Numbered from the stretch's first letter, positions 1 through 63,212 are shown. The stretch is DNA of 64,000 nt from Macrostomum lignano (GCA_002269645.1 NIVC01004002.1:1-64000); one strand, 5' to 3'. Notes: a model not told the origin generated them from the sequence alone. Made by a program: numbers and translations.

Positions 1-1376
<1,376 letters not shown>

Positions 1377-2642
1377 CTGCAAAATGAAAAGGAACGAGTG
1401 CTTAAATGTTTACAATTAAACATTAAACATCGAACAAAGTAGCGGATGAAAAATAGATAAAATTAGGCCAGAAATTAAAGCCTAATTTACATTAAATTTA
1501 CATTACTAAACGTAGATATTATTATATGTACTAAGTTTGTAAGTACATATAATATATAGCGAACATACCTACCGTACATAGCTAAGGGTTTGGGTGATAG
1601 CGGTGTCCCCTGAATAACCCGAACTACTCTGAGTAGTCTGATAATTTCAAGCTAAAAACTGCCCTAAGCCTCTAACTGCTTGTTAAATCAAAGTGAACAA
1701 TGTGTAATTAATAGGAATTATATTTGTATTCTCCATGCAGGCATCAAGATTTTGCGCAGTCAATAATATATATTGTTAATCAGAATATTTGTGCTAAAGG
1801 CTTACACAAGCACACAATAGTTGATAGCAGTATAAATACAGATAAATATAATTTGTTAATTAAAAAGGCTGGTGCCGCGGTGGAAAAAGTGGCTAAAATC
1901 CCCGGTCTATCGCCCGGCCAGAGACATGCAGTATCAGCCGCATCAGACTGTACTGTAAGAAGGCTAAAAACATAAGAAGTCCATAGCGTCAGTTAGGCGA
2001 TTAAAAACATGTTAAGGTTACGCAATCCGCACCGTGACAACCTGGGAGGATTAGTGCAGTCGTATGCGGCAATCAGAGCTGCTAATATTGGGCACAGGGC
2101 TTTAATAACATGGAGAGCAGAGGCTGAAATTTGCGGCAGGACAGCCAGCGAGCTGAGGTCACTACTGGAAAGCGGACAAACAAGTAGTAAGTCTGGCTTG
2201 AGCTCTTGTAGTTGCCTATTGGAAATGACACAGACGGGCCTATTAAGCAAAAAAATGACAAAAGCAAGGATGCGGGGAAGAGGGTTAACTGGAGCTTTAA
2301 TTAGTGGGTAAGGCAAGCATTATTACTATTGCTACCCAGGCATGAACGGAAGCCGGACGCGCGCCATCGCGGGAAGCGCTTAGGGTTGGCGCTGGCGCGG
2401 AATTCCCCAAAAAGGAGCGGCTTTATTTAGCTAATAAAAGTGCGCACGGAGATGGAAATAAGCGGCGGAATGCGGGGCGGTGCAGCTCCGATGCGCCAGA
2501 ACTAATTACAAGGAATAGAAAATCAACTACCCAGCTATTGCGTCTCTGTCCATAGCAGTTGAAGGCAAAAAACAAAACTCAAACCGCAATAAAAAACGAA
2601 CCAAAAACAAGTGGGACAAATTTGCTCATGTCTCTGCCAGCT

Positions 2643-11426
<8,784 letters not shown>

Positions 11427-11624
11427 GGCGAGCAGGCGAGGCTAACTGGCTCAGAAAATATTCGCTTTGCAGTCAGTGCAAGCTGCTATTGCATTTCATT
11501 GGGAAGCATGGGATTGAGTATTTGTGCTGTTAGCATGTAAGTTGCAGTGTACAATTACTCAGATAATGCTGCTTTTCAAAGCATTTCATTGTTACATATA
11601 AGCCTTATATCAGACTGCTCCTGA

Positions 11625-12011
11625 CTGGGTTTTTTGTGCGAATGGGTGCGAATAGCATCCTGGTCTTAAAAATCGCACCCTGAAATTTGACTCAGGGTGC
11701 GAAAAGCGCACCAGAATTTTTTGCAAGGATGTGAAGCGGATTTCACAATTTAGTGTTATGGACGTCTATGGAAGCTTCGTGTTCTTAGAATTAGCCAGTA
11801 ATTTTTTGAATCCTTAATTAATGTAGTTTAAGGAATTGTCAACTGTCGATTAAATTTTGGTAAGCAGAACCTGATGAATTGAATACTGAATAGTATTCTG
11901 GGTTTTTTTGTGCGAATGGGTGCGAATAGCACCCTGGTCTTAAAAATCGCACCCTGAAATCGAGCACAGGATGCAAAATCGCACCCAAGTTATGGACGAA
12001 AAAAAACCCTG
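11625..12011. mobile_element. hAT-type MITE A (387 bp)
   Basis: Ends CTGGGTTTTTTT...AAAAAAACCCTG, flanked by 8-bp direct repeat GCTCCTGA (11617-11624 and 12012-12019). The left end is duplicated internally at about 11898-11960. The 8-bp TSD is typical of hAT. Confidence 0.8.
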
Positions 12012-13596
12012 GCTCCTGATATTATATCAAGGTTTTGATCATTAATCAAAAACAAATACAGAATTCTTCACTATTGTAAAAGTAGCAATGGCACATTAGA
12101 TGCACTGAAATAATACTCAATAACTTGGCTGTCTACATATATGCCTTAATAAAACAAATAAATAAATATAACAAATGAAATAAATAAAACAAAATCACAT
12201 AACAGAGTCGAAGTAGGGTACATCGTTTAAGGAAAGTTGGGAGAATAAAAGCAAAAGCCCACCATGAACATCCAACTTGGTTGTAGAAGGGTGTGTCCAT
12301 TCAAGGGTGTTCTGACCTATGTGCTTGCCTTTCAAACTTTGCCATATAACTTTGCTACCCACACATGCTTTATTTGCATCATATTAGCTCACTAGACTTA
12401 AAAAATTTACCAAATTTCTGTAAAATTGCCTGAAGATGCCAATTGTTTGGTAAAACATGTTGCGCAAACATGAATAAAATTGTATTTGATATCAGTAAAG
12501 AAAGAAAACATGCAAATGTTTGTTTTTGCTATCATTCTCCTAACATAACAGGTCATATTAAATATACACTTTAAATGCAATTTGCAACTTAAGTTTGGCT
12601 AAGATAAAAGTATGCTAGGATTACAAAGAATACATTTCAGTATTCTGCTTTTGATATGAATAATTTTAACATGTAGCAATTAATGCTTTTGGGGATAGAT
12701 ACATTAGGAAAATTATTTTAACATGTTATTTTTTATTGTACAATGGCTTTAAGCCCTCAATTTGAGCTTGATGCTGAGCTCAGCTCTCAATCTGTTTTAT
12801 TATTGTTAATTCTTAGTTTGATCTATTCAAACATTTCATTTTATTAACAAAATTTCATGCACTCAGATAACTAAATATGTCTACTGTATGGAATCAATTG
12901 TTTCACCTGCAACATTTTTATTGCTGTGAACAAATAATATTTGTTATACCCCATGGCCATTATACTAGTAAATTAAGTAAAAAAACTGATTTGTTTCAGG
13001 TGATTTTCTACGCTATGGTCAATTGTACAGTTTTGATTTTTCATTAATTTTAGTACTTAGAACTCAGAAGCCTATAGTTGATATTGAATTTTGGCTTTAA
13101 ATTTACATCTTTGCTTTGATTTTTCTTATTATGTATAGTTAACTCAATTTTGTAAATCTCTATATAACACATTTTTAAGCTTTAAGTATTTTAACTTACG
13201 GTGGTTTTGTGGATTACTCATTCTAGATTATTCCTGCTAATAAATAGATAAGTAATTCTTTTAATTTGGGTTTTCAAATTCACTTGCTAGAAAGAATATT
13301 ACTAAATATTTCAGACACATTTGAAAAAATTTTTTTATATATATATCATTACTTTATATGCTGCTTTAATAAATAGCTTATTATAATCAGTTAAACATAT
13401 ACTTTAAAAGGCTATCAAATTTAACAAATAGGCCTAGTATATAAAATATTTTACCTAAATAAACTAAACTAAACATAATAATATCTAAATAGCTAATAGT
13501 TTAGTATAGGATTTAAAAATTCAAAAGCTTAGAAATTCCTTAAAATAGTTTGCATAGAGGCAAAGCCAAGGGGTAATAAGGTATAATCAGAACAAA

Positions 13597-35712: not shown

Positions 35713-38925
<3,213 letters not shown>

Positions 38926-40721: not shown

Positions 40722-42580
40722 TCACCTGTTGAGGAACCTGCTGCCCCGCTTGCGGCTGGCCTCTCCAGCAGCCTGCTGGGCTGGAGGGGCGGCCGAGGAC
40801 AGGGCCGCTGCTGCTCTGCTGTGCTGCTCGCTGCTGGCGTCGTCTCCCGTATCCACTTCATCATCATCCTCGGTCTCTTCCTCATCGCCAGCCTCCTCGT
40901 CCACCTCATCAACGGTCAGGTGATAGAAGTGGCCGGGAAATTTCTTTGCGCTCTCCACCTGTCGCGTCGACGCCGCTGCCATCTCCGATTCGGCCGTCGA
41001 ATCTGCAGGCGGCTGCACCCGGCGCAGCGCAAGACAGTTCAGCTGCGGCGTCTCCGGCAGCGACGGGCTCGGGCAGCCGCCGTCACCCTTGCGGCTGGAG
41101 CAGCAGTGGAAGACATACAGCAGGACACCCATGGTGATGACAGACACGGTCAGCAGGATCATCGTGCCGATCTCCAGCGGTCGCAACGACTCCTGATTGG
41201 CCGCACGCTGTGAATCGGAGATTAAAATCTAGTTAGTATTGTTGATTTTGCAGAGCCGGGGTTTCAACGAATCAAAATTGAGCTTCCAATGTTCGTCTCA
41301 CATGATCCAGGTTGCGCTGTTCCAGCTCCATCTGCAACAGGGAGCGGTTGAGGGCCGCCAGGCGTTGGTCGAGTGCGTTGATGGCTGCCGATTTGTTGCT
41401 GTGGGCTGCAGGCGAGGCAGGAAGTGGATGAGAGGGCGCAGGAGTGACAATTTGACGCGGCATCGAGGCGAAATTCGTGTAAAAATAGTGGAAAATACTA
41501 GGTAGGTAGGTAGGATTTCTAAATTGAACCAGGAACACAGCCCTCATCTAGAAATTGCCGACCCAAACCTTGAACTACCAGCCCCGACCCAGGAACCGTA
41601 CTTGGTCAATATAATTTAAATATGTTTCAGAGCGAATTTCATGTTCCTACGCCAGCAGCAGCTGTAGCAGATGCTGCACTCACCCATCTGGTTGGCAGCC
41701 GAGAGCTGCGCCACGGACTTCGCCACTTTGTCGATGTCGCTCTGTTCCTGAGCCAGTTTGGCCTTCTCCTTGCCGACCTCGTCAACGGCTGCCCGTATGC
41801 TGTCGAGCACCTTCTTGGGCACCTCCGGTCCGCAGACAGCCCAGCGGCCCTTGTACACCCGGTCGAGCGAGCACCAGAGCACGTGGTACGCATTTCGAGT
41901 ACAGTAGGAGTACTCAGTCCCGTTGTAGAGAAACGGGAAGTAGCAATCTGACTCTGATTTTGGGAGCGATTGAATGGATCTGCTCTGAGCATTACGGATG
42001 AGATCAGCACCGCTGGATACATGAGTAGACGTGATTTATGTACATTTAAAACTAGCAGACTGGCCTAAATGTTCCTCTGAAGGCTCTCAAAGCCGCTGGA
42101 ATAGCTCGAAAGAGCTGAAATTTAGTCGCTAAATCACCGGTGCCAGTTAATTGCGTTGAATTACTTAAAGGCGAAGAACCATGCAGTGCCGGGCCGCTCT
42201 CAGAGGAGCTAATTTTCCCACAGATTTTTTTCAAAATTAATCAGATTTCTGTATTTTTGGTTGAGATTTTTGTTGCAAATTTCCATTCGATGTGCTTTCG
42301 ACGCGCGTACAACCGGCTTAGAGAACACTTTGTGATTTTGCGTCTTACCGGTCTCCAGAATAGTTGCTTTTTGTCAAAATTGTAAATTTGTCAGCCAACC
42401 TCCAATCGAACTACGAGCTAATTTCCCGCTGATGCAGTTTCAATGAGCTTGGTGCAATAAAAAGCCAAGTACTGCTGCATTAAATACTGCGCTGGACTCA
42501 CTTGTGTATCCGGCCACTGATGTGGCGCGCAAGCACAGGGCGGCAGTGAGGAGCCAGCAGGGCAGCCGCCAGGCGGTCAT
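40722..42580 (-). CDS. Uncharacterised type I membrane protein: signal peptide, one fibronectin type II domain, coiled-coil stalk, TM helix, acidic cytoplasmic tail (about 310 aa)
   Basis: Exons 42580-42502 (MTAWRLPCWLLTAALCLRATSVAGYT), about 41965-41684 (CYFPFLYNGTEYSYCTRNAYHVLWCSLDRVYKGRWAVC, FN2 with 4 Cys, then heptads), 41405-41302 (AINALDQRLAALNRSLLQMELEQRNLDH) and 41207-40722 (TM IGTMILLTVSVITMGVLLYVF, CC, acidic run). Splice phases are compatible. Confidence 0.82.
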
Positions 42581-45830: not shown

Positions 45831-48800
45831 TCAGCGAGTGTCGGCCGCACTCGTCGACCCGGCGGCGTTTGAGGTCTGGCCGTCCACCGTCTCCAGAGCC
45901 TCTTGGGCATCGATGCGGTTGGGCCCGAGGCGCCAGATGGCGTGCACCTGGGAGGGGGTGGGTTGCGATACATCGGCTGCAGATGGATTAACAACAGACT
46001 AGCGGGGAGGGGGTTGAGATACATCGGCTACAGATGGATTAACAACAGACTAGCGGGGAGGGGGTTGAGATACATCGGTTGCAGATGGATTAACAACAGA
46101 CTAGCGGGGAGGGGGTTGAGATACATCAGCTACAGATGGATTAACAACAGACTAGCGGGGAGGGGGTTGAGATACATCGGCTACAGATGGATTAACAACA
46201 GACTAGCGGGGAGGGGGTTGAGATACATCAGCTACAGATGGATTAACAACAGACTAGCGGGGAGGGGGTTGAGATACATCGGCTACAGATGGATTAACAA
46301 CAGACTAGCGGGGAGGGGGTTGAGATACATCGGCTACAGATGGATTAACAACAGACTTGCGGGAATGGGGACTAAGGGGATTCTGTTCTAGGTTTAAAGC
46401 AAGCACCCCAGAAAAGCAGAGCCCCAGGGGCCACTCCACGGGCGGGGCAGCTCACCTTCGTGCCGAACACCAGGGCCAGCGTGATGGTGGCGCAGCCGCA
46501 GGTGCAAATGGCCACAAGAATCAGCCGCAGCTCATAGCTGGAGTCGGGCAGCACGAAGGCCACGACGACCCCGATGAGCGCCAGCACGGTGGTGTTGTAC
46601 ACACAGACTCCGATCTTCTTCGAGTCGTTGACGGCATCCAGCTGCACGGTGCGAGTCTCCCAGGCGAAGATGATGGCAGCGAACAGGAGAATCCCTGCGG
46701 TTCATCCGGCGAAGAGCTCTATGCATTATTGGTGCTCTTGGAGCACCCAGTTTTTGAAACTTCATTCGATAACATCGATCCTGGCTCCTAATCTCAGCGG
46801 TGTATGTCGAGCAATAAGCAGTTGCGCATTTGGCTACGCGGCAGATTTTGTCTGCATTGCCTCCCCAATGCTTAGTAAGTCTTAATAAAGAGATTTACCC
46901 GATCAAAACATCAAATATTTCAAATATTCTCGTCCTAAGCTCGAGACATTCGAGATCTACTGTAGCTACCATCCTCGTAACTGTACTCATAAGGTCCATG
47001 GCGCTTCCCAACGCCTCTAGTCCCAGGCTCTACTCTGTGCGTCCCAACGCCTCTAGTCCCAGGCTCTACTCTGTGCGTCCCAACGCCTCTAGTCCCAGGC
47101 TCTACTCTGTGTCCCAACGCCTCTAGTCCCAGGCTCTACTCTGTGTGTCCCAACGCCTCTAGTCCCAGGCTCTACTCTGTGCGTCCCAACGCCTCTAGTC
47201 CCAGGCTCTACTCTGTGCGTCCCAACGCCTCTAGTCCCAGGCTCTACTCTGTGCGTCCCAACGCCTCTAGTCCCAGGCTCTACTCTGTGTGTCCCAACGC
47301 CTCTAGTCCCAGGCTCTACTCTGTGTGTCCCAACGCCTCTAGTCCCAGGCTCTACTCTGTGCGTCCCAACGCCTCTAGTCCCAGGCTCTACTCTGTGCGT
47401 CCCAACGCCTCTAGTCCCAGGCTCTACTCTGTGCGTCCCAACGCCTCTAGTCCCAGGCTCTACTCTGTGCGTCCCAACGCCTCTAGTCCCAGGCTCTACT
47501 CTGTGCGTCCCAACGCCTCTAGTCCCAGGCTCTACTCTGTGCGTCCCAACGCCTCTAGTCCCAGGCTCTACTCTGTGCGTCCCAACGCCTCTAGTCCCAG
47601 GCTCTACTCTGTGCGTCCCAACGCCTCTAGTCCCAGGCTCTACTCTGTGCGTCCCAACGCCTCTAGTCCCAGGCTCTACTCTGTGCGTCCCAACGCCTCT
47701 AGTCCCAGGCTCTACTCTGTGCGTCCCAACGCCTCTAGTCCCAGGCTCTACTCTGTGCGTCCCAACGCCTCTAGACCCATGGCTCAACATCTACCTGATC
47801 AAAATCTGCAGATAGTTTCGATAGATGATCTGCTAGATGGCCTGCAGCAGCGCAGGATTTCACGGAGACAGAGAGCTCACCTTTTTTTCCAAATTCGGCG
47901 CCCAGCCAGATGGCTTGGTTGCGGCTGGCGCACAGCAGAATTCTGGCGCTCAGAGTAGACCCGTCCGATCGCTCCTGGAAAGTGTGAAATTTTCGCCACC
48001 AGTGATGCTCACATTTTGCACACCGGACGTTTCACCTGCTCGAAACTCACAGTCCCTTTTATAAGCTCAAAATTTTTTGTCACTTTCCTAAGTCCGAAAA
48101 TAACGGAAGTGCAACCTGACGTGAAGCTGATCACACTTTCAGCGCAGCAACAAAGGTTCGAATATACGAGCTACAATGCAAAAGTACAATTCTCACCTCA
48201 ACAAGATACTCGCTAGCTTGCAAAGCCAACGGGTCCAGGCCGGCCCACAGTGCCAGGAGCACAATGTCAGCGACCACCACCACCACGATGAAGAGCAGCA
48301 AGTACCGGCTTTGCACGGGCTGCACGCAAAAAGTAAACGGGAATTTTTGGTATCTCCAGATTTTCCCAGTCGAGCTCAAGCAACTTGACTTACCGCTTTG
48401 CGCAGCTTGAGGTTGGTGAAGATGCGGTGCACCCACCAGGTCTTAGCCAGCATGGCGCCGAAGGCAGCTGAGTAGCCGAGGGTCAGCAGGGCCGTCTGCG
48501 CCCAGCACAAGGCGGTGCTCACAGACCAGTGCGAGTTCGCGGCCATCACAATGCAGGAGGCGTAGCACATGAGGCAGCCAGCGCCAATCACATTGTTCAC
48601 CAGCGGGCTGCTCATCTTGATGAGGCGCAGCTCCCTGTAGTGAACGTTCACAGCGACCGCCGCCACGGACAGAGCCATGCCCAGTGATGAGATTGACGCG
48701 ATGGCAGTCGTGGCGGGAAGGCTGAGCCTGATGTCCTCAATGATCACTTCTGGGGCGTCCAATGGGGGCTGACCGCCTGGATTGAGGGCCAGAATGGGAC

Positions 48801-51800
48801 TCTTGAAAGCAAAGTGCATGCAGATCTTTTTTAATAGTGCTTGGATTTCTGCAGCATCGAGTGTGCAGCGAATTGAAAATGGAGGGGTCAAAGTGGTGTG
48901 GCGGCAACGCGTCCCATTAGAGTTAGCGGATGCATGGAAGCCTGGCGAGTGCGTGATTCAGACTGCAAGGGGAGCGAGTTATTTATACGCGTGCTTGCGC
49001 TCAGGGGTCAGTGAAATTGGCACCTTTTCTCTCGATCGCCTTCTCAGCAAACCAGCAGACTGAATTTACAACAGAATAAATTACGAGCGAAAAATTGCAA
49101 ATGATTTGTTAAACGAGCTAGATTTTACGTATTTATTAGGTGATACTCGGCCACCCCAACCAGAGGAAACTCACCGATGAACCACAGGTCCTCAAGCCAA
49201 GTGACGTTGCCTTCGGTTGGGTCAAATGTTGCAACCAGGTTTCTCTTGAGGTCTGTGGCAAATAGGATTGCAGATATTTTAGCTCTCCACTTGCTCCTTG
49301 GTACACAGCCTACAGTGGTAAACAGCAGCAAAAATAGCAGCTCTCACTTTTAAGCTGATAAAATCGAATTTGAGACAGCCTGTCGCCTCGCCGGTCAAAC
49401 CTCACTGGACCCTGAGAGGATTGGTGTGGACGGGATGTTGTTAGAAGATCCAGTTTTTTGCCAATGTAAGGTCAGCTTCGCTTGTCTATATGTTGAACTC
49501 GCGGGCTGCGATCTCGTCTAGCCCGGTCGTTTTGTTTTCCCCGGGTAGCGGGTTCGGTGCGGGACTGCCCCGGGTGTGCGGCGGAGGGATGGACAGAAGG
49601 CGAACGGCCGGCGCTCCTCGAGGCGGATGGCCACTCCGAGGGGAAGAGGGAGAGATGCGACTCGGGGGCGTACAGACACTCCTCGGTCACGGAAGGCTCG
49701 GGGTACTGCCGCGGTCAGCGGAGCGGATAGCCACTCAAAGCTGGCCCGGGAGTCACCGAGGTGAATGAGAAAGCGAGGTGAATGTGAGGGATTGGCCGGG
49801 GCGTACAGACACTCCGGACCAATCAAGAGATACGAGGTGATGGACTGGCTGGGGCGTACAGACACTCCAAGCCAATCGAAGAGTGCAGGTGAGCGAGGAG
49901 GTGAGTGTACGCCCCCGAGTCGCATCTCTCCCTCTTCCCCTCGGAGTGGCCATCCGCCTCGAGGAGCGCCGGCCGTTCGCCTTCTGTCCATCCCTCCGCC
50001 GCACACCCGGGGCAGTCCCGCACCGAACCCGCTACCCGGGGAAAACAAAACGACCGGGCTAGACGAGATCGCAGCCCGCGAGTTCAACATATAAAACAGC
50101 CTTTGTGGTATCCCAGCTGCACTGTGTAAATATTAGAGAATAATGCAAGCACCAGTAGTATTTCCTGTGTTGAAGCAATACCGGAAGAAGTTAGAAATAC
50201 AGGTGTCTTTCTGGTGCACCAAAATTAATCGTCTAGAATGTAAAATAAAATGGCGCATCAGTCAGAAGGTGCTCTGAAACCTTTACAACCTTTACAACAA
50301 TTAAATATCAGGATTTGTTCCAAGGCATCCAGAGTAATGATTTTTTGCTCCTTGGCATTTAACCCGCCGTAAGTAAAATCAAAGGAACGGAATGCCCATT
50401 GGTTTTTCGCTCACCGACAGTCCGAGAAAGTCCAGCGACAGCAGGCTGCGGAACAGGCGGGCCTTGAAGCTGGAGTTCGCCAGCTGTGGGCTGGCCTGGA
50501 AGGCCTCCGTCTGCAGGCTGGAATTCAAAGCCAGAGCGGCCGCCATCGCGGCGTCGAAGCGCAGGTCGAAGCCGGAGACCGACTTCATCGAGGTGGCGCT
50601 TGCCCCGGCCCGTCTGGAGGCCAGGAAGTCGGCGTACAACTGGCTCAGCGTCTGCAGATTGGGAACATGATGTACTTTCTAGCCGGTAAACCCTCTCTGA
50701 AGCTCACATTCACCAAGGTTGAACAACATTGTAGGTCAGTTAAGTCTTTATTAGAACCTTCAATGATTTGCCATCTCTTATGATCTTTATAGTTTGTTTG
50801 TGAGCCGAACAGAATTAGCTGATGGAGATCAGAGAGGCGATTATTTTCGGGCTTTCGAACAGGACCTGAACAAAGGTCCTGTGAAATTTCGAGACAAAAT
50901 TCAACTTCCAATAAGACTTCAGCTACAAAAAGTGTTTGGCTTTATCTTTGAGATCAGCAATTCGCGTACCGGACGCTTAGACTCTAAATTAAGAATAAAT
51001 CAGTCAATATGGCTGCTCATCTGAGCCTCACCTTGCCAGCGATGCCCACCCGGGCCTCCGGCAGGCCGGGCTCCATGACGGGCGTGTCGAACTCCACGGC
51101 GCCCTCAAGGCTCCGGGCCCGCTCCGAGTCGGTACAGCTGTCCTGCGACGAGGCTGTGCCAGAATCCGGAAATCCCAATTGAATCCAGGAGTACTTCATG
51201 CCGTAGGCCCCGAGGCTGTAAATCTGCAGGGTTTGCGCCATCGAGGCGGTTACTTTGACAAGACTACCGCACAATGTGCTCTCATCACAGAAGAATGAAT
51301 GGAATGAAGCGCTAATCCTGGCTCGGGTATTTTTCACACGGATCCTTTCACATGGAGCCAGAGCAAGCTCCAAGTGAGATGATATTTCGGCACAAGTATT
51401 GCGTCACGACTAATTTTTTTCGAAATGGGAACCTGAAAATTTAACTGTTGTTTCCGCATGAAACCAAGGTTTTTTCTCGGGGCCAATAGAAACCTGTGAA
51501 TTATTTAATATTTTTTACTTCCAGGTCAACACTACAAAATTATTCCCAGAATAAAATATTACATTTTTCATGAGCCCCTTGATATTAATTAACGTGGGTA
51601 GCTCGAAACATCGTACCCCGTACCCCGTGCCTTGGTTCCGATGAGCACCTCGATTTCGAACGAAAACATTTCTGGATTGGCTTCAGAGAAAAATTTCAAT
51701 ATTCTGCACGAGTCAGTCATTTATTGAGTCATTGAACGATAAGTCTCTTTAAAGTTTCTACTCGTTCAGCTTCCAGATAAAGAGGCCTAACAGTTCCAGT

Positions 51801-53774
51801 TGAAGCCGATTCTGTCTGAAGACCAGCCATTGTCATCTTCGAATCTCTCTGACCTGCATTGAAAAGCCACGTTAACTTACAATTAAAATACTTGAGCAAT
51901 TCTTAGCTACTACCAGTTCCTCATCAAGTCAAACTGCAAGCCAGAATTACAATGCATTCGAGCCGCTTGCCGGGAAGCTCATTGGAAGCATCGCGAACGA
52001 CCACAAAAACTCGATAGTTGTTGCGCTGAAAAAGAGCGAAATGGTTCGAAATGGAGCTGCAGTTCGTGAGCAAAATCGTCAGAGAATCAAGTTGCAATTA
52101 AAAGCCCCAGCCGTACCAGCGAGCTGGCGATCACCTCAGTTGCATCGCGGCCGTAAATCGCTTTGCGGTAGTTGGTGAGGTTTCTTCGCTGGAGCGCGGT
52201 CTCCAGCTCCTGGGACGTCTGCGGGGGTTTATTCGCGGCAGCTCAGTCACTCAGTCTCAGTTCCTGCTCACACAGCAGCATTCAGGTTGAATTGATTTAA
52301 ATTGAATAAAGACCCAGTGACAGATACGGCAAAAGCAGCTGCATGGAATTATTCTGCCGCGGTAAATCCAGCAGCATTCTGCAGTAAGTTACTCACATGG
52401 TAGACCGTCTCTGAGTCGGTGGTGAGCAGTGCAAATCTGCTCCAGCGGTACCTCAGCAGAAGCTCGATTACCGGCTGCACGAACTGGCTCGGGCTGGTGG
52501 GCAGCCGGACAAAGTAGGGATACTGGGACTTCACGCTCAGCTCTGGCATCGTGTTCGAGTAGCCAATCTGCGGGTCTCCATCAATATTCATGGGCTGCCC
52601 TTCACCGAAAATCAACTGGCAACATCTGCTGTCCTTTGCAGCCATCACTAGGAGGTAAGAGCGATAACCTATTCGTGAGACGGAGACGTGGGTGATGGCC
52701 TATTTGTGAGACGGAGACGTGGGTGACGGCTTATTCGTGAGACGGAGGCGTGGGTGAGGGCTTATTCGTGAGACGGAGGCGTGGGTGAGGGCTTATTCGT
52801 GAGACGGAGGCGTGGGTGACGGCCTATTCATTTTACTATAGCTTCACGATGTACACGATTTTACTATTGCTTCTAGCACGCCAAGGATTGCCTGAGGCTG
52901 GAAAGTCAGTACTTTCTAATATCTATACGATGTGCCTAAGATTCAAGCTGTAATCGAATCCAGCGCTTTGACAGCTCAGGTTACGAAAAATTCTTATAAA
53001 GAAACCTGTTGTAAGCATCATTTTTAGCAAAACCATAAGGTCACAGGCACCATTGCGCTTCCGACAATCAAAAAATCGCATTTGACTGAACTATTTTGAG
53101 TAGCCAACCTAGAAATTCATAGTTTTGAGAAGCGCCCCACCAACCCTGCCGCTATTTTGTCGTGTCAATGGATGATGCCCCAATCCGTACTCTGTAGTTG
53201 TGTCATTAGAAATTTATTTTCACCCCTTCTTTGGACCTTGTCGTGGAACTGAGTTAAATAACTGGATGTTCTGATAGGGGAGTTTCTACTATCAAGGCGT
53301 CAACAATTGTTTGACTGCCGTCCCTCCAGTCACCTGCGGCAGGTAGTAGAACTGGGCGATGTCGGCCACGATCTGCGCCTGCTGGGAGAAGGCCGGTCCG
53401 AGGAGCAGAGCTTTGTTGGGCGGGCTCAGGTAGCCATCGAACAGAGCCTTGGCCGCGCTGCCGAGCTTGTCCTGCGGTGCGGAGTTCGCATTGAAATTTC
53501 GCCTTTTCTGATATTGGTATGATTAGTCATGCAGGTAGAGTAGCGGGATTCTCACCCCGTCAGTCACAATTTGCTGGTAGTTGAACTGCACCGCGGGAAA
53601 CAGGCTGCTCAAGTTGGTGTTGATGTAGCCAAAAGCATACCTGAAGTAGTCTGCGTCGGCTGAGAACGGAGCCTTGTCAGAGATGATGCAGAGCACGGTA
53701 GCCGCTTGTCGAGCCGCCCCAGCAACTGGCCAGAGCAGGAGGAGGCCTAAAAAGACAAATTTTTGGTGCCGCAT
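45831..53774 (-). CDS. GABA-B receptor-like class C GPCR (Venus flytrap plus 7TM), about 743 aa
   Basis: 14 in-frame exons: 53774-53556, 53471-53334, 52567-52397, 52218-52117, 52025-51951, 51223-51032, 50651-50415, 49411-49348, 49252-49175, 48776-48394, 48319-48197, 47974-47881, 46694-46456, 45947-45831. Motifs: signal peptide, LLLGPAFS, IGYSNTMPELS.KSQYPYFVR, GPVRFDRRGDR, LIKMSSPLVNNVI, FGAMLAKTWWVH, FAWETR, NDSKKIGVCVYN, LVFGTK. There is no Cys-rich domain before TM1, as in GABA-B receptors. Confidence 0.92.
45960..46362. repeat. 51-bp minisatellite (about 8 copies) in the last GPCR intron
   Basis: Unit gagatacatc(g/a)gctacagatggattaacaacagactagcggggagggggtt. Confidence 0.96.
47008..47775. 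repeat. 36-bp minisatellite (about 21 copies) in GPCR intron 12
   Basis: Unit cccaacgcctctagtcccaggctctactctgtg(c/t)gt. Confidence 0.98.
49491..50089. mobile_element. Ginger-like MITE (599 bp) with 184-bp perfect TIRs in GPCR intron 7
   Basis: 49491-49674 is the reverse complement of 49906-50089. Termini are TGT...ACA with TATA on both flanks (49487-49490 and 50090-50093). TGT ends, a 4-bp TSD and long TIRs match Ginger DNA transposons. Confidence 0.85.
52668..52828. repeat. 31-bp minisatellite (5 copies) in GPCR intron 2
   Basis: Unit (c/t)tattcgtgagacggag(a/g)cgtgggtga(c/g/t)ggc. Confidence 0.9.
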
Positions 53775-54741: not shown

Positions 54742-57700
54742 TGTTGACAAGAGAATCCAAAGAATCGAGAATGCAGCACTTGGCCTCGCATTTGGCAGTT
54801 GTAGCAGACAACAAAATCAAAAGGGGTTCACGCCGTCTAGTCTTGCTAGGTATATTTATTCTCAATTTATTAAGTAGAAGGCGGGGTTGACACAGGCTTT
54901 AGCGAGGGCCGGTGTAAATGTGCATGAATTACTATGTACTCGTACGTTAACCAATCAGAATGGGGGGGTGAGAAAGGTGGCGTGAGGCGCGGAGGGGGGC
55001 AGGTAAAATAGGCAAATGATGAGTAATAGTACAGACGTACAATGAAATAAGCAAAACCTTTACTCTTCAATCCATACCTTCCTTTTTGGCATGAGCACAT
55101 GCCAACAACAAAGAGCACCTCGAACAAAGATCTTAGAAATGGAAACATTCAATTATTATAGTACCGCGTATTTTTCAGGAAAAAAATTAAATCGCTAGGA
55201 TGAAATACGCTCGACAAAATGACAAAGTGAAAATAGAATCAAATAATTAGGTTAGTAAACGAATCACGGGGATGCGGTAAATATTCGAACAGAATTAGCA
55301 AACGGGATTGAACCTGAAACGTAGCGTACAGTGCGATGAAATGAGCAAAGGGGATAAACGCTGAAAAATGGGAAAACTAACCGAACAGAGTATGCAAAAC
55401 CTCTTCGCAACAAACGCCAAAAAAACAAAATAACACGAAAAAACACAGAATACAGAAAACAAACACAAAAAACAGGCAACAAAAACTCCCAAAAATAGAC
55501 AGCCGACATGAAAAAACACAATGCGAGAGAACCAAACTGGATTTAATGCGCAGGGAAGCAAAACTCTCAAAAGCCAAAAAAGAAAAATGTAGCGCGTTAT
55601 CCCATCACCAAAATAGCTTGAAACTGAAAACATCGAAATTGAAACGCATGCAACGGTTAGTCGAAGTCAAGGAAATGATCGCTAAATCGCAGAATTTTTT
55701 CAATAAAGTAAAGTTTGGTCAAAAATTTCAACTACTCAGTTCTCAAGCCTTCCCTTCGTGATTGGTTGACGCAGCCTCGCAATCGGCCTCGCGGAGGCCT
55801 TGCCAACCAGCTGCACTTTCGCAACTCGCACCCGTCTCTCCGCGGCAGCCAGCAGATGGTCGCGAATCGAACTCTCTCGCCTTGCATGCAGATGCGCCGC
55901 TTTGAGCTCGAGAACCTGGTCGCCATGGTCGGATCTAATCGTCTGACCGCCGATCGTTCCTCATTCATGCTAACGACCAGTCACCTTTTGTGCATACCAC
56001 CAGCTGTCAACCTCCGTCAGCTGCTTCGCTGAAGTTCGAAGTTCGAAGAAAACGCATCGGCTGGATGGAATTCGGTCGTGACACACCTCCACTGGTCCGG
56101 ATCTGTGACAGACTTGGTCTCTCTGATGCGGTTCGCAGCAAACGGCTGGTCGACTTTAAAGGTGCACTTGTTCCAATCGCTTCTCCATTCTACACCAAGC
56201 GTCTTGATGGATGGCATCGGTGTCCTTTCCAATGTTACTTCGGCTACTGATCTTCTGGTGGCACTCTGCTCAACAGTTCTCGCGAATCGGATATCCATTT
56301 CCTGAGGTGCATGCCTGCACGCTCCCAGCGAGTCTTCAATTGGATCACCTCAGCCTCTGACCCGACCGAATCTAAACAATCGTCCATATTGGTGGAGTTG
56401 AGAACAGCGTCTGCAGCTAATGGCAGCTCTTCTTTCAGGCGTTCCGCATGCTCACGAACTACGAACTGAGCAAGAAACGGCGAGCTTGAGTTTCCGAAAA
56501 CGATGCGGTTGGTCTCAAACATTTCAACAGGCTTGCTGGAGTCCATATCACGCCATAGAAAGCTATGCGTCGGCCTGTCCTCCGGTGCCATTTCGATCTG
56601 GAGGTACATCTCGGACACATCACAAGCCCCAGCCACCGCATCTCTCCTGAAGCAAAGCAGAACGACAAACAATTCTCGCTGAAGCTTCGGCCGTGGGAGG
56701 ACCAGAGAATTTTTAAGGACTTTTCGTTCCCGCCCGCCGAGGCATCGAAGACGATGCAAATCTTTGTCGTCAGCTTGTCGAATCGAATGATCGGAAAATG
56801 CGGCAGAAAACACCTTCTGGCTGAAAACCCCTCTACTGCAACGTGCCGAATGTAGCCTTGCTGCCCATATCGCTCTAGACATGCTTGGTATTGCTTTGCC
56901 ACCTCCACATCTTTCTTCAACCGGGTCTCTGTGTTGCAAAGCCGTTTGATCGACATCTTATAGTTATTCGAGCGAATTTTCGCTTCTGGCTTCCACGGAA
57001 TTCCCACCTGGTATCGGCCGTTAATTAGTTTTAACGAAGACTTGGCTTGCTCTACTGCAGCCTGCTCGTCCGCTGTCCGATTTTGGTCCTGAGCTGACCG
57101 GATTTCTTCGACCTCCCGGAACTTTCGTAGCACTGGTGACAGCATCTCCTCGCTGGTGAAACAGAAAAAGGTGCTGGCCAAGTTTGTCTGGTGCTGAATC
57201 TGTTCTACTGGACCCACACCTGTCCATCCAAGGGGAGTCAAACGTGCCTGTGGCTACCCAAGGCCACCGCGAACTTCTCGGTAGGACACATGTAACTCCG
57301 CATGATCCACTCCTATCAGCAGTTCTATGAGATTCGGCGCATGGAGCTGAGGAAATGAAATATGCTCCAGATGTTTCCAATCCGCTGCTGTCGTCTGCCA
57401 ATCCGTGGCCTTCAGCTTCCCGGTGACGCTGTCTGTCGTTAATGCCGTGATCGGACGACTCAGACTTCCATCTACACTTTCGAGCGTCATCGTAACCGGA
57501 GCTGTCAAGAATTTCTCTGTCTGTCCGTTCAAAACGTTCACTTTCACTTGCTCCACATTGCCCTCCAGTCCCAGAACTTCAGCAATCTCTGCATTCACAT
57601 ACGTCCTTGTACTCGCGTCGTCCAACAGTGCGTTAACTTTCACAACACAGCTGCCTGCCTTGAGAACCACTGGAACAGTTCGCAGCGACGTTGCACCTCC

Positions 57701-58758
57701 ACTTCCTGCCATCATCGTTACGGCGGCTCCTTTGCGACCGACCCGACTTAGCGCTCTTTTTGACCCCTTGTGCCGGCGAATTCTTCTTCGACTCAAATTT
57801 TACTGCCTCTTCAGAATGTAGCAAGCGGTAGTGAAACCTGTTGCATTCACCGATTCCACATCGGCGTCCATGACGGCATATCCGAGCAGCATGACCGCGA
57901 GCTAAGCAGCAAAAGCATGAAATCGAATCTTCCGCAGCCTTCCAGCGATTTTCAATTGACAGCTGTCTAAATGTTGGACACTTTCACAGCTCATGTTGAT
58001 CTTGACACAGCTTGCAAGATTTTGACGGAGACGTGGTCGCGGCAGTCGCCGCAGTCTGATGAGCAGTGATAACTGAGTTACACATTTCATGGTGTCTTGA
58101 AACTGTTGCTCAATTTGATCCAGCTCGTCCAGATCTTTGTCTCGAGCTTCTTCTTTTGCTTCTTGCTGAAGGAGCTCGTCATAGAATGCGTCAAGCAGCT
58201 TCACGCACTCCTCGTGTGCTGCAGTGGCTTCATCGTACGCTTGCTGGATCGCTCCATGATCGGTGTCGCTCTGTAGCAACAGTACCAGCCGGTTTCGAGT
58301 TCTAGTTGCTGCAGACTTCGTTCTTGCTTTCACTCGTCGAAACTGTTCGATGCGAAGCCGCTCCTCAGTGCTGATCTCTTCTTCTTCATCTTCTGAGCAG
58401 CCAGTCTGCTGCTGATTCAATTCGTGGCTGGCAATTTACCTGAACCACGCTCTGCTACCAAAATGTTGACAAGAGAATCCATTAAAGAATCGAGAATGCA
58501 CCAACAAATCAAAAGGGGTTCACGCCGTCTAGTCTTGCTAGGTATATTTATTCTCAATTTATTAAGTAGAAGGCGTGGTTGACACAGCGGGGGGTTGTAA
58601 ATGTGCATGAATTACTATGTACTCGTACGTTAACCAATCAGAATGGGGGTGAGAAAGGTGGCGTTAGTTGCGGAGGGGGCAGGTAAAATAGGCAAATTAT
58701 GAGTAACAGTACAGACGTACGTACAATGAAATAAGGAAAACCTTTACTCTTCAATCCA
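54742..58758 (-). mobile_element. Internally deleted BEL/Pao LTR retrotransposon (4017 bp)
   Basis: LTRs at 58758-58464 and 55074-54742 (TGGATTG...TGTCAACA) with 5-bp TSD TACCA on both sides. PBS TGGTAGCAGAGCGTGGTT (initiator tRNA-Met type) at about 58443-58460; PPT AAAAAGGAAGG at about 55077-55087. Broken gag (57902-58420), protease ALLDDAS, RT (FLPHFPIIRFDKLTTK..IVFDAS, CDVSEMYLQI, FGNSSSPFLA, NMDD), QWR.V...HPAD; no integrase. Confidence 0.93.
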
Positions 58759-59699
58759 TACCATTTTAACTTTCAAGCACCTCTCTCAAGTCCGATTTTC
58801 TCATGTACATGTACGCTCGTACTTCCCGCTCTAGGCAGCATGCATTTGCTTGCGCACCCATGACCAGAGAAATACACACGATATACAGTGCATGAATCTA
58901 TGCTTATGCGGAAGAAAGGCATGTAGGTGGGCTGTGCAAAATGCAGACTTTGAAGGTAGCAGAAGCAGTAAAATTTGTTTCAGGGGAGCCTAAAATTTAC
59001 TAAGCAGATGAACAGAAACATGCGATCTTTGCACTCTGGAGTCTTGGCGAACTCAGCTCAAAAGTAGCTCAAGGCTGGCCGCCGGTGCGTTTCCAACTTG
59101 TCTGAAAACTCGCCCGTCGACGTCTGCATCCAATCTAAGGAGTTGCCTGTCCGGATCTTGCATTTTCTGGAAGATATTCGCTGTGCCATCCGGGTGCACC
59201 GCAGAATGGTTGACAGCATGGGGACTGGTGAAACTCAGTGTTCGCTTTGGGTCCCGCTACTTCTAACAGAGGTTTCGATGAGACAACCACTTGAGATTTG
59301 CCAAGCGAACCTGGGCTGTGCGGATAAGCTCGGCTAGAACTTAGCGAGCACATTGTCACCGGTGATTATAAGACATGGATAACTCACTTCAATTCTCTCA
59401 CCAAAATCACAGTCGTTGGTCTGGACAACGAAGGGATCGAATATCCTCCAATCAAAGCACAGAAGAGAAGATCATGCTTCTTTATTTGATTTTCATTGGC
59501 CAATGCTGACCGTTATGTACATGTGCATGTACGTCAAACTCTGACAATACAACAACAGAATACGCAGTTAGCGTCACATGGCGCGCTTCAAGGCCAGGTC
59601 GCGAATGAACGCCACGCCGCCGGCCGAATCCGGGGCGCCGGCGTCAGCCAGCAGGCAGTCGACGAAAGGCCGAGTGCGCGCCTACCCCCGCCGGTAGGG

Positions 59700-61170
59700 T
59701 GCCTGCAGCGTTAGCAGCAGCACCTCCTGCACCGGCTCTGGGCAGTACGACTCGGCGCGGATGATGTGGCATGTCAGCTGGAGTCGCCGACGGCGCAACA
59801 GGTCGCTTGGACGGACCAGCCCGGCGCTGCGATAAAAAGCCGCGTTGGTTACTCGCTCGTAGCCGATCTTGAAGGCGGCGCGCAGCAGGCCAGCGCGCGC
59901 CGCGTCAACTTGTTACTCGAGCGACTCCGTCAGCGTCTAGGTCTCGGCGTTGTACAGCAGGACGCGGTCTCGATCGCCGCCTGGAACAACGCCGCCCTCT
60001 GGCGGTCAGGTAAGGCCTCAGACTGCAGGACTGCCCTCACAGAACGAAAAGCAATCCAGGCAAGCCCGCGGCGACGCTGCAAATCCTCGCGGACGCCGGG
60101 AACCAGACCGCCGAGGCAGACGAACTGCTGACAACGCAGAAGCTCTGTCGCCTGTCCATCAGCGACTCCGAAATCGCAGCCTCGATGTCGTCCGGCACGC
60201 AGAACATGACGGTCTTCTGCGTGTTGACCACCAGGCCCACACTCGCCGCAACAGCAACTAGCTTCTCCAGCTGTCGCTGGGCGCCCTCGACAGTTGAGGA
60301 CAGCAGGGCGAGGTCGTCGGCGTAGCCAACCTTAGACCCACGCGTCACCGCAACAGAAAGCCGCGGGTCGTCGTTAGTAGGAAGAGCGGTCCGCAGCACC
60401 CAGTCCAGCACCAGAACGAACAGGAACGGTGCAAGCGTATCTCCCTGAAGCACCCCGGGAGGATCGATGTCTAAAAAGAAGTCCGATAGGCTATCCGGTG
60501 TTGAAACAGCAGCTTTCGTATCACGGTACATCGCCATGATGGCGGAAATCAGCTGCTGTGGCACGTTGTACGCACGGAGCACCTTTGGGAGCACAGAGAC
60601 CTGTCGACCGAGTCGAATGCCTTCTTGAAATCTAAGGAGATAACAATCAGGATCGATTGGCGTATCCGCGTGCTTCCTCGACGAGTCGCCGAAGATCTGC
60701 GTCACTGTGCCGCGGCTGGAAGCCGTTCTGCTCAGGACGCAGGTACAGATGCAGCACGGGCTGCAATCGCGATATGTGTAGCATCCGGTTGAAAAACTTC
60801 AGAGTGCAGAACTGAAGGCAGATACCTTGATGCTCCTCAAGCCTCGTGGTGCCCGGCTTCTTGGGAACTGCGACGATGTGCGCCGTGGTCCATTCATTGG
60901 GTGCCTCCTCACCGAAGAGCACGCGATTCATCACTCTGACGACCTCACTGGCCACACAGTAGATGCGCAGCGCCTCGATGGGCACCTCGTCCAGACGCAG
61001 CGCTTTACCGCCCGGTGATTGCTGGGCGATCGCCTCACAACGTCGGTTGTGCTGACTGGTGCTAGGCTGAAGCTCTCCTCTGCCGGCAATGGCATCTCCG
61101 GCGGCAGCGTCAAACCCTGAACAAAGTTCGATCGGCGAGACATCAGCAACGCGAGGTTTGGAGGTCACAC
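59700..61170 (-). mobile_element. RTE-like LINE fragment, copy 2 (more of RT retained)
   Basis: ALRLDEVPIEAL, HIVAVPKKPG, LRPEQNGF, GVLQGDTLAPFLFVLVLDWVLRTAL, GYADDLALLSSTVEGAQRQLEKL...VNTQKT; several frameshifts; 3' end similar to 31024-31080. Confidence 0.9.
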
Positions 61171-61899
61171 ACAGACACTGCGTTGAAATGACACCATCAC
61201 AACGCCATGCCTATGCAATATAGAGCCAGAAGGACTTAAGAAGCTCCGGTTGCCTGAAGAAGTTCTTGCCACACCCACCATATATATACCTGAGGCCTAC
61301 ATTGACATAGCTCTGTTGGACTTCGCTGTCTTCACTCGCTCAAAGCAATTCTGCCGCCAACGCAGATAATCGGGACTCATACTCAGCTGCAGTGCATCAG
61401 AGTCAGCCACTGTTCTTTGCCGATGCAATTGATTCGCTTCGACAACGCTGTCCCTGCTCTAAGGCGACTAAAACTTCGAGAAGAGGACGATTTCACCACA
61501 GACGATTAGGAGTAATTGTAAACTACATCATGGGTTCGATCTTGTGCTAACTGATGATTAGTTTGCTTGTACGGCTTAGTACGAATCAAATTTTTACAGC
61601 CTCAATTTCTCGTTTTTTGACATTTTTCGACATTAAAAGTCAAACCTAGCCAAAGATCCGACTATACGATTAACAATTTGAACTTTACAATTGACTATCA
61701 ACTCGTTCCTAAGTAGTGCAATAAGCATAAAAATCGTTGTTCGTTTTTCACGATTATGACTGTGGGCTAATTGTTTTGATTGACGATACGCTGGCAAACT
61801 TGACTTGCGAAACGGAAATAATTTCTCATGTTCCCTCTTCGTCCTTTTCGGCTTCTTAGTCTTTCGAACGTTTAGAGGAGCGCGACTTTCATTACTATT

Positions 61900-63212
61900 A
61901 TGGATTTGGATCTGGACTACTATTTCCCGTTCAGTGATGTATCTAAAACATTACAGCGAATTAATATGTATCCATTTTTCGACATATCACATTATATTTT
62001 GATGTGTTTGCTTGTTAAGGAAGATACTCCTCAACTTGGTGAGCTTGATGAAATGATTTTTTTCTTGTAAACCTTTTTATTGCTTAGAATTGAAATTTAT
62101 AATAATTTGTCTGTAAAGCTTAGATAAAATTTCCCAAAATATTAAAAGCATGGGACTATTAAAAACGAGTGCAATGAGCATTATTAATATTATGCACTAA
62201 GAACAATATAAGAGCACTTAGCATTTGTATTTTTGCTAAAATCGACCGCATACCTGCCGACAGACCATTTTTAGTATATGGATTGCTGCATACTCAGCCT
62301 ACATATTTCCTTAAAGGCAAAGCCAAAATATTTTTATAGGCTAATCTTATTTATACATCAATGGTGTCAATTATCAAAACATTTGACAAAAAAATAAAAT
62401 GATTGCACAATTATATATTTGCTAAATATATTATGAATTGAGCCTAAATTTGCTTATTTGTGTTTTTAGGCCTATGTAATAAAATTGTTTTATTATTCTA
62501 TTGTAAAACCTGCTTGAAAACATTTTAAAGAATTCATAAAACCTGCCTAAAAATTAATAAAATGCTTCTTAATTTTTCAGGTACACCAACATTTTCAAGA
62601 CATCACCCATTTGCATCTTGGCTAGCAAGCATGCTCATGTGCTTTGCAGGCACTATAATTGGTAATGGTTTGACTGGTGAACCACTAATTGTGCCCTTTC
62701 AAAACCATAGAGAAATTCTGGTAGCAACAACTGTGTGGTAAGTTATTTGCATTTATTTAAGCTTCTGGTCTTATTTGTATTTAGATGCTTGTCATTGTTT
62801 TTCCTTTTATTACTGTTATCACCACTACCTACTTAAAGTATTCCAACTTAATTTCAGTGCTAGTTCATTCTGTGCATACAAGCTTATTTACCTATCAAAT
62901 TTCCCAAATGTAGAAGTTAATGTTTAAGTGTAGAAATTTTGTTTCAATGGGCTTAGTGAGATATTACTAAGATGATATAGGAAAGTATTTAGTTTAATTT
63001 TTACAACACTAAATACACTGTTTTCAGGTATGTCCTCAACTATGCACCCTTTGACCTAGTCTACAAATTAGCTAAGTTTGCACCTGTCCATCTGGCTGTC
63101 TGCCTGTTGAAAGAAATACAGAGAACACGGAAAGTCTTTGATGGAGTGGCTGTAGGCGTTCGGCTTTATCCCCAGGCCTACTTGCTCAATGTACTCATCG
63201 GCCTTGTGAAAG
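61900..63212 (+). CDS. TMEM38: Trimeric intracellular cation channel (TRIC/TMEM38), first three exons; the rest lies beyond the window or was not recognised
   Basis: Exons 61900-62038 (MDLDLDYYF...MYPFFDISHYILMCLLVKED), 62581-62737 (RHHPFASWLASMLMCFAGTIIGNGLTGEP...ILVATTVW) and 63028-63212 (YVLNYAPFDLVYK...LLKEIQRTRKVFDGV...VLIGLVK). Phases are 1, 2, 1 and motifs match TMEM38A/B. Confidence 0.92.

Follow-up and report, generated by a model that had tools for sequence, protein, structure and literature searches.

The window analysed here, a 64,000-nt stretch of the Macrostomum lignano genome (GCA_002269645.1, NIVC01004002.1:1-64000), opens with the 5' part of a gene for the conserved regulator of splicing and transcription NKAP. 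Directly upstream of it, on the same strand, lies a gene encoding an ankyrin-repeat protein that resembles PPP1R16/MYPT. The strand of both the NKAP 5' end and the upstream gene, which the sequence-only reading of this DNA had left unnamed, is minus. That reading had proposed that NKAP lacks a genomic start codon, that its initiator AUG is supplied by a trans-spliced leader, and that the two genes form an operon. The coordinates of the features are collected in Table 1.

Table 1. Features of the 64,000-nt window, positions counted from its first nucleotide
Feature	Position	Strand	Remarks
NKAP exon with Nkap_C domain	1..262	-	continues past the window start; matches P0001 over 262-137 in frame -1 and over 120-1 in frame -2
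NKAP intron	263..500	-	GTAAG donor at 500, ccccccAG acceptor at 264-263
First recognisable NKAP coding exon	501..1376	-	RS-rich N-terminus, acidic/basic middle; 99% identical to P0001 over 1169-501
Tandem repeat in NKAP RS domain	1062..1340	-	75 nt (25 aa), 3.7 copies, 92% identity
Polypyrimidine tract and acceptor, ttccttttcattttgcAG; proposed SL addition site	1377..1396	-	17/20 pyrimidines; TTGCAG at 1382-1377
Spacer from PPP1R16-like stop to NKAP acceptor; presumed outron and/or NKAP promoter	1377..2642	-	1,266 nt; last 480 nt 30% GC
In-frame TAA stop	1410..1412	-	11 codons 5' of the NKAP exon; stop-to-stop ORF 495-1409
Out-of-frame ATG	1421..1423	-	47 nt 5' of the NKAP exon; ORF 1301-1423
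ATG TAC GGT AG/GTATGT	1563..1579	-	donor-like GTAGGT at 1572 (phase 1) and GTATGT at 1568 (phase 2)
GTAAG, only GT[AG]AG donor-like site of the spacer	1801..1805	-	no ATG before it in any frame ahead of a stop
First AATAAA past the PPP1R16-like stop, candidate poly(A) signal	2422..2427	-	216 nt downstream of the stop
Last exon of PPP1R16/MYPT-like gene	2643..3164	-	Q/P-rich, ends KVTCCSVM (CaaX); TGA 2645-2643
First coding exon of PPP1R16-like gene	11183..11426	-	own genomic ATG at 11426; GTAAG donor at 11182; ankyrin repeats also in the following exon
DLD gene, five exons	35734..38925	+	35734-36090, 36338-36655, 37779-38067, 38212-38282, 38467-38925; 497 aa
Fibronectin type II domain exon	41619..42035	-	E 9e-10
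Class C GPCR exons	46375..52699	-	ANF_receptor 52352-52699; 7tm_3 48379-48957 and 46375-46701
Fragmented retroelement ORFs	56247..61210	-	RVT_1 at 60040-60798 and 56247-56957; CCHC zinc-knuckle gag-like ORF at about 57.6-58.0 kb
First exon of TRIC-channel gene	62529..62738	+	E 6e-18

Gene content and the state of the NKAP copy

The assignment of the gene to NKAP proved solid. UniRef protein P0001 (345 aa, Pfam Nkap_C PF06047, no Met) matches the minus strand over 1169 to 501, 262 to 137 and 120 to 1 at 99-100% identity, and the top named homologues are the NKAPs of cestodes, trematodes and one monogenean. The NKAP architecture is present, with an RS-rich region, a basic region and then the C-terminal Nkap_C domain (PF06047). 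When the whole RS-rich exon was used as a protein query, RS words dominated the search and P0001 was its sole match. Within the RS domain, the 75-nt tandem repeat is in frame and its copies are 92% identical, indicating that part of the NKAP RS region is a recent in-frame duplication; the start of P0001 falls in the third copy of this repeat.

Relative to P0001, the reading frame across the Nkap_C domain is interrupted in this copy. Between 137 and 120 on the minus strand there are 16 nt where RRGEIG of P0001 requires 18, corresponding to two 1-nt deletions, CCCC to CCC and GGCC to GGC (bases 139-120), which shift the frame twice in the most conserved segment of the domain. These deletions are either long-read consensus errors or genuine mutations of one redundant gene copy in a neopolyploid genome. 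If the latter, the NKAP copy could be a decaying duplicate that yields no functional protein, with the intact source of P0001 located elsewhere and the matter of its start codon moot. The two frame-shifting deletions in RRGEIG, two K/R differences from P0001 and the recent large-scale duplications known in M. lignano are all compatible with such decay, yet the 292 codons of exon 1, the splice sites and the remaining Nkap_C exon are intact and 99-100% identical to P0001, and each deletion removes a single C from a C run, as is typical of long-read consensus error. We consider a decaying duplicate unlikely, while leaving it appreciable weight; even if it were true, the 5' architecture would be common to the functional copy, and initiation from a spliced-leader AUG would not be displaced as an interpretation of that architecture.

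The upstream gene matches Pfam Ank families over 10872-11441 (E 1e-11 to 1e-18), with MYPT1 (1s70_B) among the PDB matches, and its ankyrin repeats together with a predicted C-terminal CaaX box (CSVM-stop) fit a PPP1R16/MYPT-type PP1 regulatory subunit. Its introns, bounded by GT[AG]AG and CAG, are packed with tandem arrays (3247-5633, 5848-6347, 7952-9201, 9704-9929 and 10246-10820; 27 bp x 89, 24/47 bp x 21, 35 bp x 36, (CT)113 and 40 bp x 15). Comparable arrays occur in the window at 25.9, 36.9, 39.8, 42.8, 44.1, 46.0, 47.0 and 52.7 kb.

The remainder of the window holds several further genes. The dihydrolipoamide dehydrogenase (DLD) gene is intact, with its own ATG, a mitochondrial presequence, a strong match to human DLD structures and a 74-bp x 9 tandem array in intron 2. 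On the minus strand, class C GPCR exons and an exon encoding a fibronectin type II domain were recognised as well, and on the plus strand a TRIC-channel gene is represented by its first exon. Fragmented retroelement ORFs lie at 23.6-24.2 kb and 28.8-31.6 kb in addition to the cluster listed in Table 1, in which the best matches of the reverse transcriptase ORF at 60040-60798 are Macrostomum lignano proteins in UniRef (67-82% identity). These matches place the window in M. lignano or a very close relative, an assignment with which base composition, the wealth of tandem arrays and the near-identical UniRef NKAP agree. An origin from Drosophila, which has no spliced leader, was suggested at first by the GC-rich, repeat-rich sequence and a CG6066/MYPT-75D-like gene pair, but is contradicted by the flatworm NKAP matches and by the retroelement proteins.

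The 5' end of NKAP and the search for a genomic start codon

The first recognisable NKAP exon, read from 1376 down to 501, comprises 876 nt or 292 codons, contains neither a Met codon nor a stop, and ends in a CTG/GTAAG donor at 500. Across its 5' boundary the minus strand reads TAA (1412-1410) ACA TTT AAG CAC TCG TTC CTT TTC ATT TTG CAG (1379-1377) / CGT TCC AAA TCA AGG TCG CCG CCA, so that translation from 1376 on gives R-S-K-S-R-S-P-P with a codon boundary exactly at the exon start (phase 0). The AG at 1378-1377 (ttccttttcattttgcAG/CGT) is preceded by 17 pyrimidines in 20 positions and is clearly the best acceptor among those scanned within 150 nt on either side. These observations bear out the earlier description of an exon that opens in frame at a strong acceptor, with an in-frame stop close upstream and no ATG. 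None occurs between the TAA and the exon start, and the first in-frame Met encoded in the genome is codon 323, already within the Nkap_C domain. Base composition changes at the same point: the exon has a GC content of 63.6% (GC3 73%) against 30-31% across the 484 nt on its 5' side, and this step from 64% to 30% places a compositional boundary exactly at the 1378-1377 acceptor.

We then listed each minus-strand ATG in 1377-3200 from which an open frame leads to a phase-0 GT, and extended the scan of GT[AG]AG-type donors to 12.5 kb. Over minus-strand positions 1377-12500, the search gave no stop-free segment that starts with ATG and closes in phase 0 on a GT[AG]AG donor before 5.6 kb. From 5.6 kb upstream on, all phase-0 pairs of ATG and GT[AG]AG lie in or between the PPP1R16-like exons. 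The phase-0 candidates in the spacer itself have poor donors (GTCCGG, GTTTAA, GTACTT, GTAAAT) and would encode AT-rich nonsense peptides. The GTAAG at 1805 is unable to deliver a start codon: in all frames, the open stretch that leads up to it is free of ATG.

The remaining candidate for a cis-spliced 5' exon begins at the ATG at 1579. Spliced to 1376, its phase-1 donor-like site leads to a stop within about 17 codons and its phase-2 site to one within about 30. A cis-spliced exon could nevertheless supply the ATG if this segment were joined to the weak AG at 1364-1363, giving an exon start at 1362, or if the exon lay outside the 1.27-kb spacer. The AG/GTATGT at 1568 is a respectable donor, its phase-2 join at 1362 recovers the RS frame, and long first introns are possible in M. 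lignano, where the mean intron is 1.1-1.4 kb (PMC5730564). Against this, splicing to 1362 must bypass a far stronger acceptor only 14 nt upstream (17/20 versus 12/20 pyrimidines) and loses the conserved RSKSRS residues, while joining 1568 to 1376 instead runs into a stop after 30 codons. In addition, GTATGT differs from the species-typical GT[AG]AG donor (PMC8629364), and further 5' the pairs of phase-0 ATG and GT[AG]AG are confined to PPP1R16-like exons or the gaps between them. A cis-spliced start therefore appears improbable.

An unspliced start hidden by an assembly artefact is still less plausible, and we give it very little credence. If one base were missing within 1409-1377, for example in a T run, the ATG at 1423 would come into frame. 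This ATG is open to the exon in its own frame (ORF 1301-1423), and indels are known at the locus, where 1.25 kb further downstream two C runs have each lost one base. However, the intervening 47 nt have 30% GC against 64% (GC3 73%) in the exon and carry a textbook polypyrimidine tract followed by CAG, the resulting 16-residue extension is unlike the N-terminus of any homologue, and the other coding sequence checked in the window, DLD (1,494 nt) and NKAP exon 1 (876 nt), is free of frameshifts.

A spliced-leader AUG as the candidate initiator

The absence of an AUG-ending spliced leader (SL) from the organism, which the sequence-only reading had named as fatal to its proposal, is contradicted by the literature: M. 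lignano has a single 35-nt SL, CGGTCTCTTACTGCGAAGACTCAATTTATTGCATG, which ends in ATG (PMC8629364). SL trans-splicing involves 30-39% of the genes of this species and 45% of its human-conserved genes (PMC8629364, PMC5730564), and the motif at its trans-acceptors is [T/C]TNCAG (PMC8629364). The genome paper on Macrostomum cliftonense and M. hystrix regards the final ATG of the SL as probably a start codon (PMC10468722). More widely, an AUG stands at the end of every flatworm SL reported, according to the accounts in PMC12582326 and PMC9851317; in Schistosoma mansoni, as the same two papers cite Cheng et al. (2006), 28% of trans-spliced mRNAs have this AUG in frame, and more than 40 cDNAs need it.

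The NKAP acceptor conforms to this pattern. TTGCAG at 1382-1377 agrees with the M. lignano trans-acceptor motif [T/C]TNCAG (PMC8629364), and an SL AUG joined at the exon start is in frame with the main ORF, AUG/CGU UCC AAA giving M-RSKSRSPP. In an alignment of N-termini, this product carries the conserved RS(R/K)SRSP motif at residues 2-8. Homologues have the motif 1-13 residues past their Met, as in MNRSRSRSP and MSSDVQHRERSRSPF, and M-RSKSRSPP would thus be a natural start for the protein.

On this evidence, an SL-supplied AUG at 1376 is the best explanation for the NKAP start codon, and we hold it to be probable. The NKAP pre-mRNA would be trans-spliced at the acceptor AG at 1378-1377, and the 35-nt SL, ending in ...UUGCAUG, would be joined straight to C1376. 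The predicted junction brings the SL end ...ATTTATTGCATG up against CGTTCCAAATC at 1376, and a chimeric read would be expected to consist of a 5' part ending in ...CAATTTATTGCATG and an aligned part starting from 1376 with CGTTCCAAATCAAGG. The terminal AUG of the SL would then act as the initiator (AUG/CGU UCC AAA, M R S K) of an ORF of about 415 aa once the rest of the gene is added. The 1.27-kb upstream stretch would be removed as an outron, and it more probably harbours a promoter belonging to NKAP than the tail of a PPP1R16-NKAP polycistron. Both SL addition at 1376 and translation from the SL AUG are steps that we infer from the genomic sequence.

Several observations weigh against this interpretation or temper it. 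According to the outron rule, a trans acceptor is one without a paired upstream cis donor (Conrad et al. 1993, as cited in PMC8629364), and the spacer contains three donor-like sites that bear on the rule, GTAAG at 1805, GTAGGT at 1572 and GTATGT at 1568. The first of these is a good donor-like site within the putative outron; if transcribed, it could pair in cis with 1376, although such a pairing would still bring no ATG. The two 1-nt deletions in Nkap_C indicate that base-level errors or pseudogenisation are possible at the locus. Furthermore, the three other genes of the window with readable 5' ends (PPP1R16-like, DLD and TRIC) each have a genomic ATG, so that NKAP would fall in a minority class.

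Further searches gave negative results. The M. lignano SL sequence was not found anywhere in the window. No protein match was obtained for VSYCEDSIYCM, the peptide encoded by the SL, in fusion with the NKAP N-terminus, and exact look-up in assemblies of P0001 and of the NKAP exon, DLD exon-1 and PPP1R16 exon-1 ORFs returned no record. NKAP and PPP1R16 are absent from the supplements of PMC5730564, PMC8629364, PMC12582326 and eLife 20607.

The upstream gene and comparison with known systems

The PPP1R16-like stop lies on the same strand 1,266 nt upstream of the NKAP acceptor (TGA at 2645-2643), in agreement with the distance of about 1.27 kb given earlier. Besides the AATAAA listed in Table 1, the spacer contains minus-strand ATTAAA sites at 2301 and 2106 and GC-rich blocks at 2350-2400 and 1900-1950. 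The rest of the 64,000-nt window contains no repeat or transposon copy of the spacer, and no tandem array lies inside the spacer itself. A search against Rfam gave no gathering-level match in the window, and in the spacer only a chance-level snoRNA match.

If the two genes formed an SL-resolved operon, one promoter 5' of 11.4 kb would produce a polycistronic precursor from which SL addition frees NKAP while giving it its AUG. This arrangement is compatible with the SL-AUG mechanism, to which it adds co-transcription, and the genes adjoin on one strand with nothing recognisable in between. Of the trans-spliced genes in M. lignano, 40% have been placed in operons, and 18% of operons open with a gene that is not trans-spliced (PMC8629364). 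The distance between the genes, however, speaks against it. For M. lignano operons the modal spacer is about 100 bp, and 1 kb with repeats subtracted serves as the working cut-off (PMC8629364); for parasitic flatworms a limit of 300 bp or less is used. Here the NKAP acceptor is separated from the stop by 1,266 nt and from the first AATAAA by about 1,020 nt, a spacer that lies at or above the 1-kb cut-off, greatly exceeds 300 bp and holds no repeat to subtract. This spacer would shrink to 0.7-0.9 kb, below the cut-off, if the PPP1R16 3'UTR ended past the ATTAAA at 2301 or 2106; the intercistronic distance is thus not short, and becomes borderline only with use of a distal ATTAAA. The GC-rich blocks could also be promoter sequence.

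Conservation of the gene pair, which would be supportive of an operon and is not required for one, was absent from the two other flatworms checked. In Echinococcus multilocularis, the upstream neighbour of NKAP is a sacsin-like gene 512 nt away, and in Schistosoma guineensis no same-strand gene lies upstream within 10 kb. Trans-splicing alone is no proof of an operon, since about 60% of M. lignano genes that undergo SL trans-splicing are outside operons (PMC8629364). Accounting for both sides, we consider an operon doubtful, and a NKAP-PPP1R16 operon is not supported by the sequence features considered here. Of the two parts of the original proposal, the SL-AUG start gains from the phase-0, motif-matching acceptor, the lack of a credible cis ATG and the fit to homologues, whereas the operon loses by the length of the spacer and the lack of synteny. 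A stricter combination, in which NKAP of Macrostomum would be translated only after SL trans-splicing (obligate coupling) and would also be co-transcribed with the PPP1R16-like gene over a spacer of about 1 kb, seems a little more doubtful still; if true, it would call for a wider definition of the operon in M. lignano.

The NKAP genes of the same two species show features of their own. The S. guineensis gene is a single exon, with an acceptor-like tttttttaAG 2 nt before its genomic ATG (L002 9990-10003); the AUG of an SL added at that point would not be in frame (AUG ACA UGG UGA). The E. multilocularis model (L001 10001-10100) has a 32-residue N-terminal extension (MTYQYDVLLCYRQ...) in contrast to other cestode NKAPs, which lack it and start near MSTRIQ or MSSDVQ; judging from these sequences, its start codon is probably mis-annotated.

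If confirmed, NKAP would provide a clean, gene-specific example of M. lignano using the terminal AUG of its SL as initiator. For annotation, the consequence is that models built on the genome only, or from reads whose SL was trimmed along with its ATG, would leave genes of this class 5'-partial or wrongly extended. P0001, the database protein for the NKAP gene, is a fragment without a Met. A simple genome-wide screen of Macrostomum is suggested, for first coding exons without an in-frame ATG whose phase-0 start follows a [T/C]TNCAG acceptor; none for such ATG-less first exons is reported in the M. lignano literature searched. Nor did that literature and its supplements, including PMC5730564 and PMC8629364, contain an analysis of whether the SL ATG serves as start codon, or any mention of NKAP. 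The understanding of the mechanism itself, established in schistosomes since 2006, is unchanged by the present case. As read here, NKAP would be a further example of the known flatworm SL-AUG mechanism, with a value that is mainly practical, for annotation.

Among known systems, the closest likeness is to the SL-AUG mRNAs, or slORFs, of Schistosoma mansoni and other flatworms (Cheng, Cohen, Ndegwa and Davis 2006, as cited in PMC12582326 and PMC9851317). As presented there, these mRNAs share with NKAP an AUG-ending SL, an acceptor in phase with the ORF and the lack of an in-frame AUG at the gene's 5' end, so that the SL must supply the Met. NKAP agrees with them in every respect that can be judged on a genome sequence, namely the AUG-ending SL, the in-frame junction and the lack of a genomic 5' AUG. 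The schistosome cases, as described in the same sources, derive from cDNAs and translation assays, whereas the NKAP junction is predicted from the genome sequence only; the NKAP case also differs in its host, a free-living macrostomid, and in the gene concerned. Compared with the trans-spliced genes of M. lignano itself (Wudarski et al. 2017, PMC5730564; Ustyantsev and Berezikov 2021, PMC8629364), NKAP matches in its [T/C]TNCAG acceptor and, as a human-conserved gene, belongs to the class most often trans-spliced in this species (45%; PMC8629364). With SL-resolved operons of the M. lignano or C. elegans type, the locus shares same-strand tandem genes and a downstream gene that opens at an acceptor, but it differs from them in a spacer roughly tenfold longer than the modal intercistronic distance and in the lack of conserved synteny.
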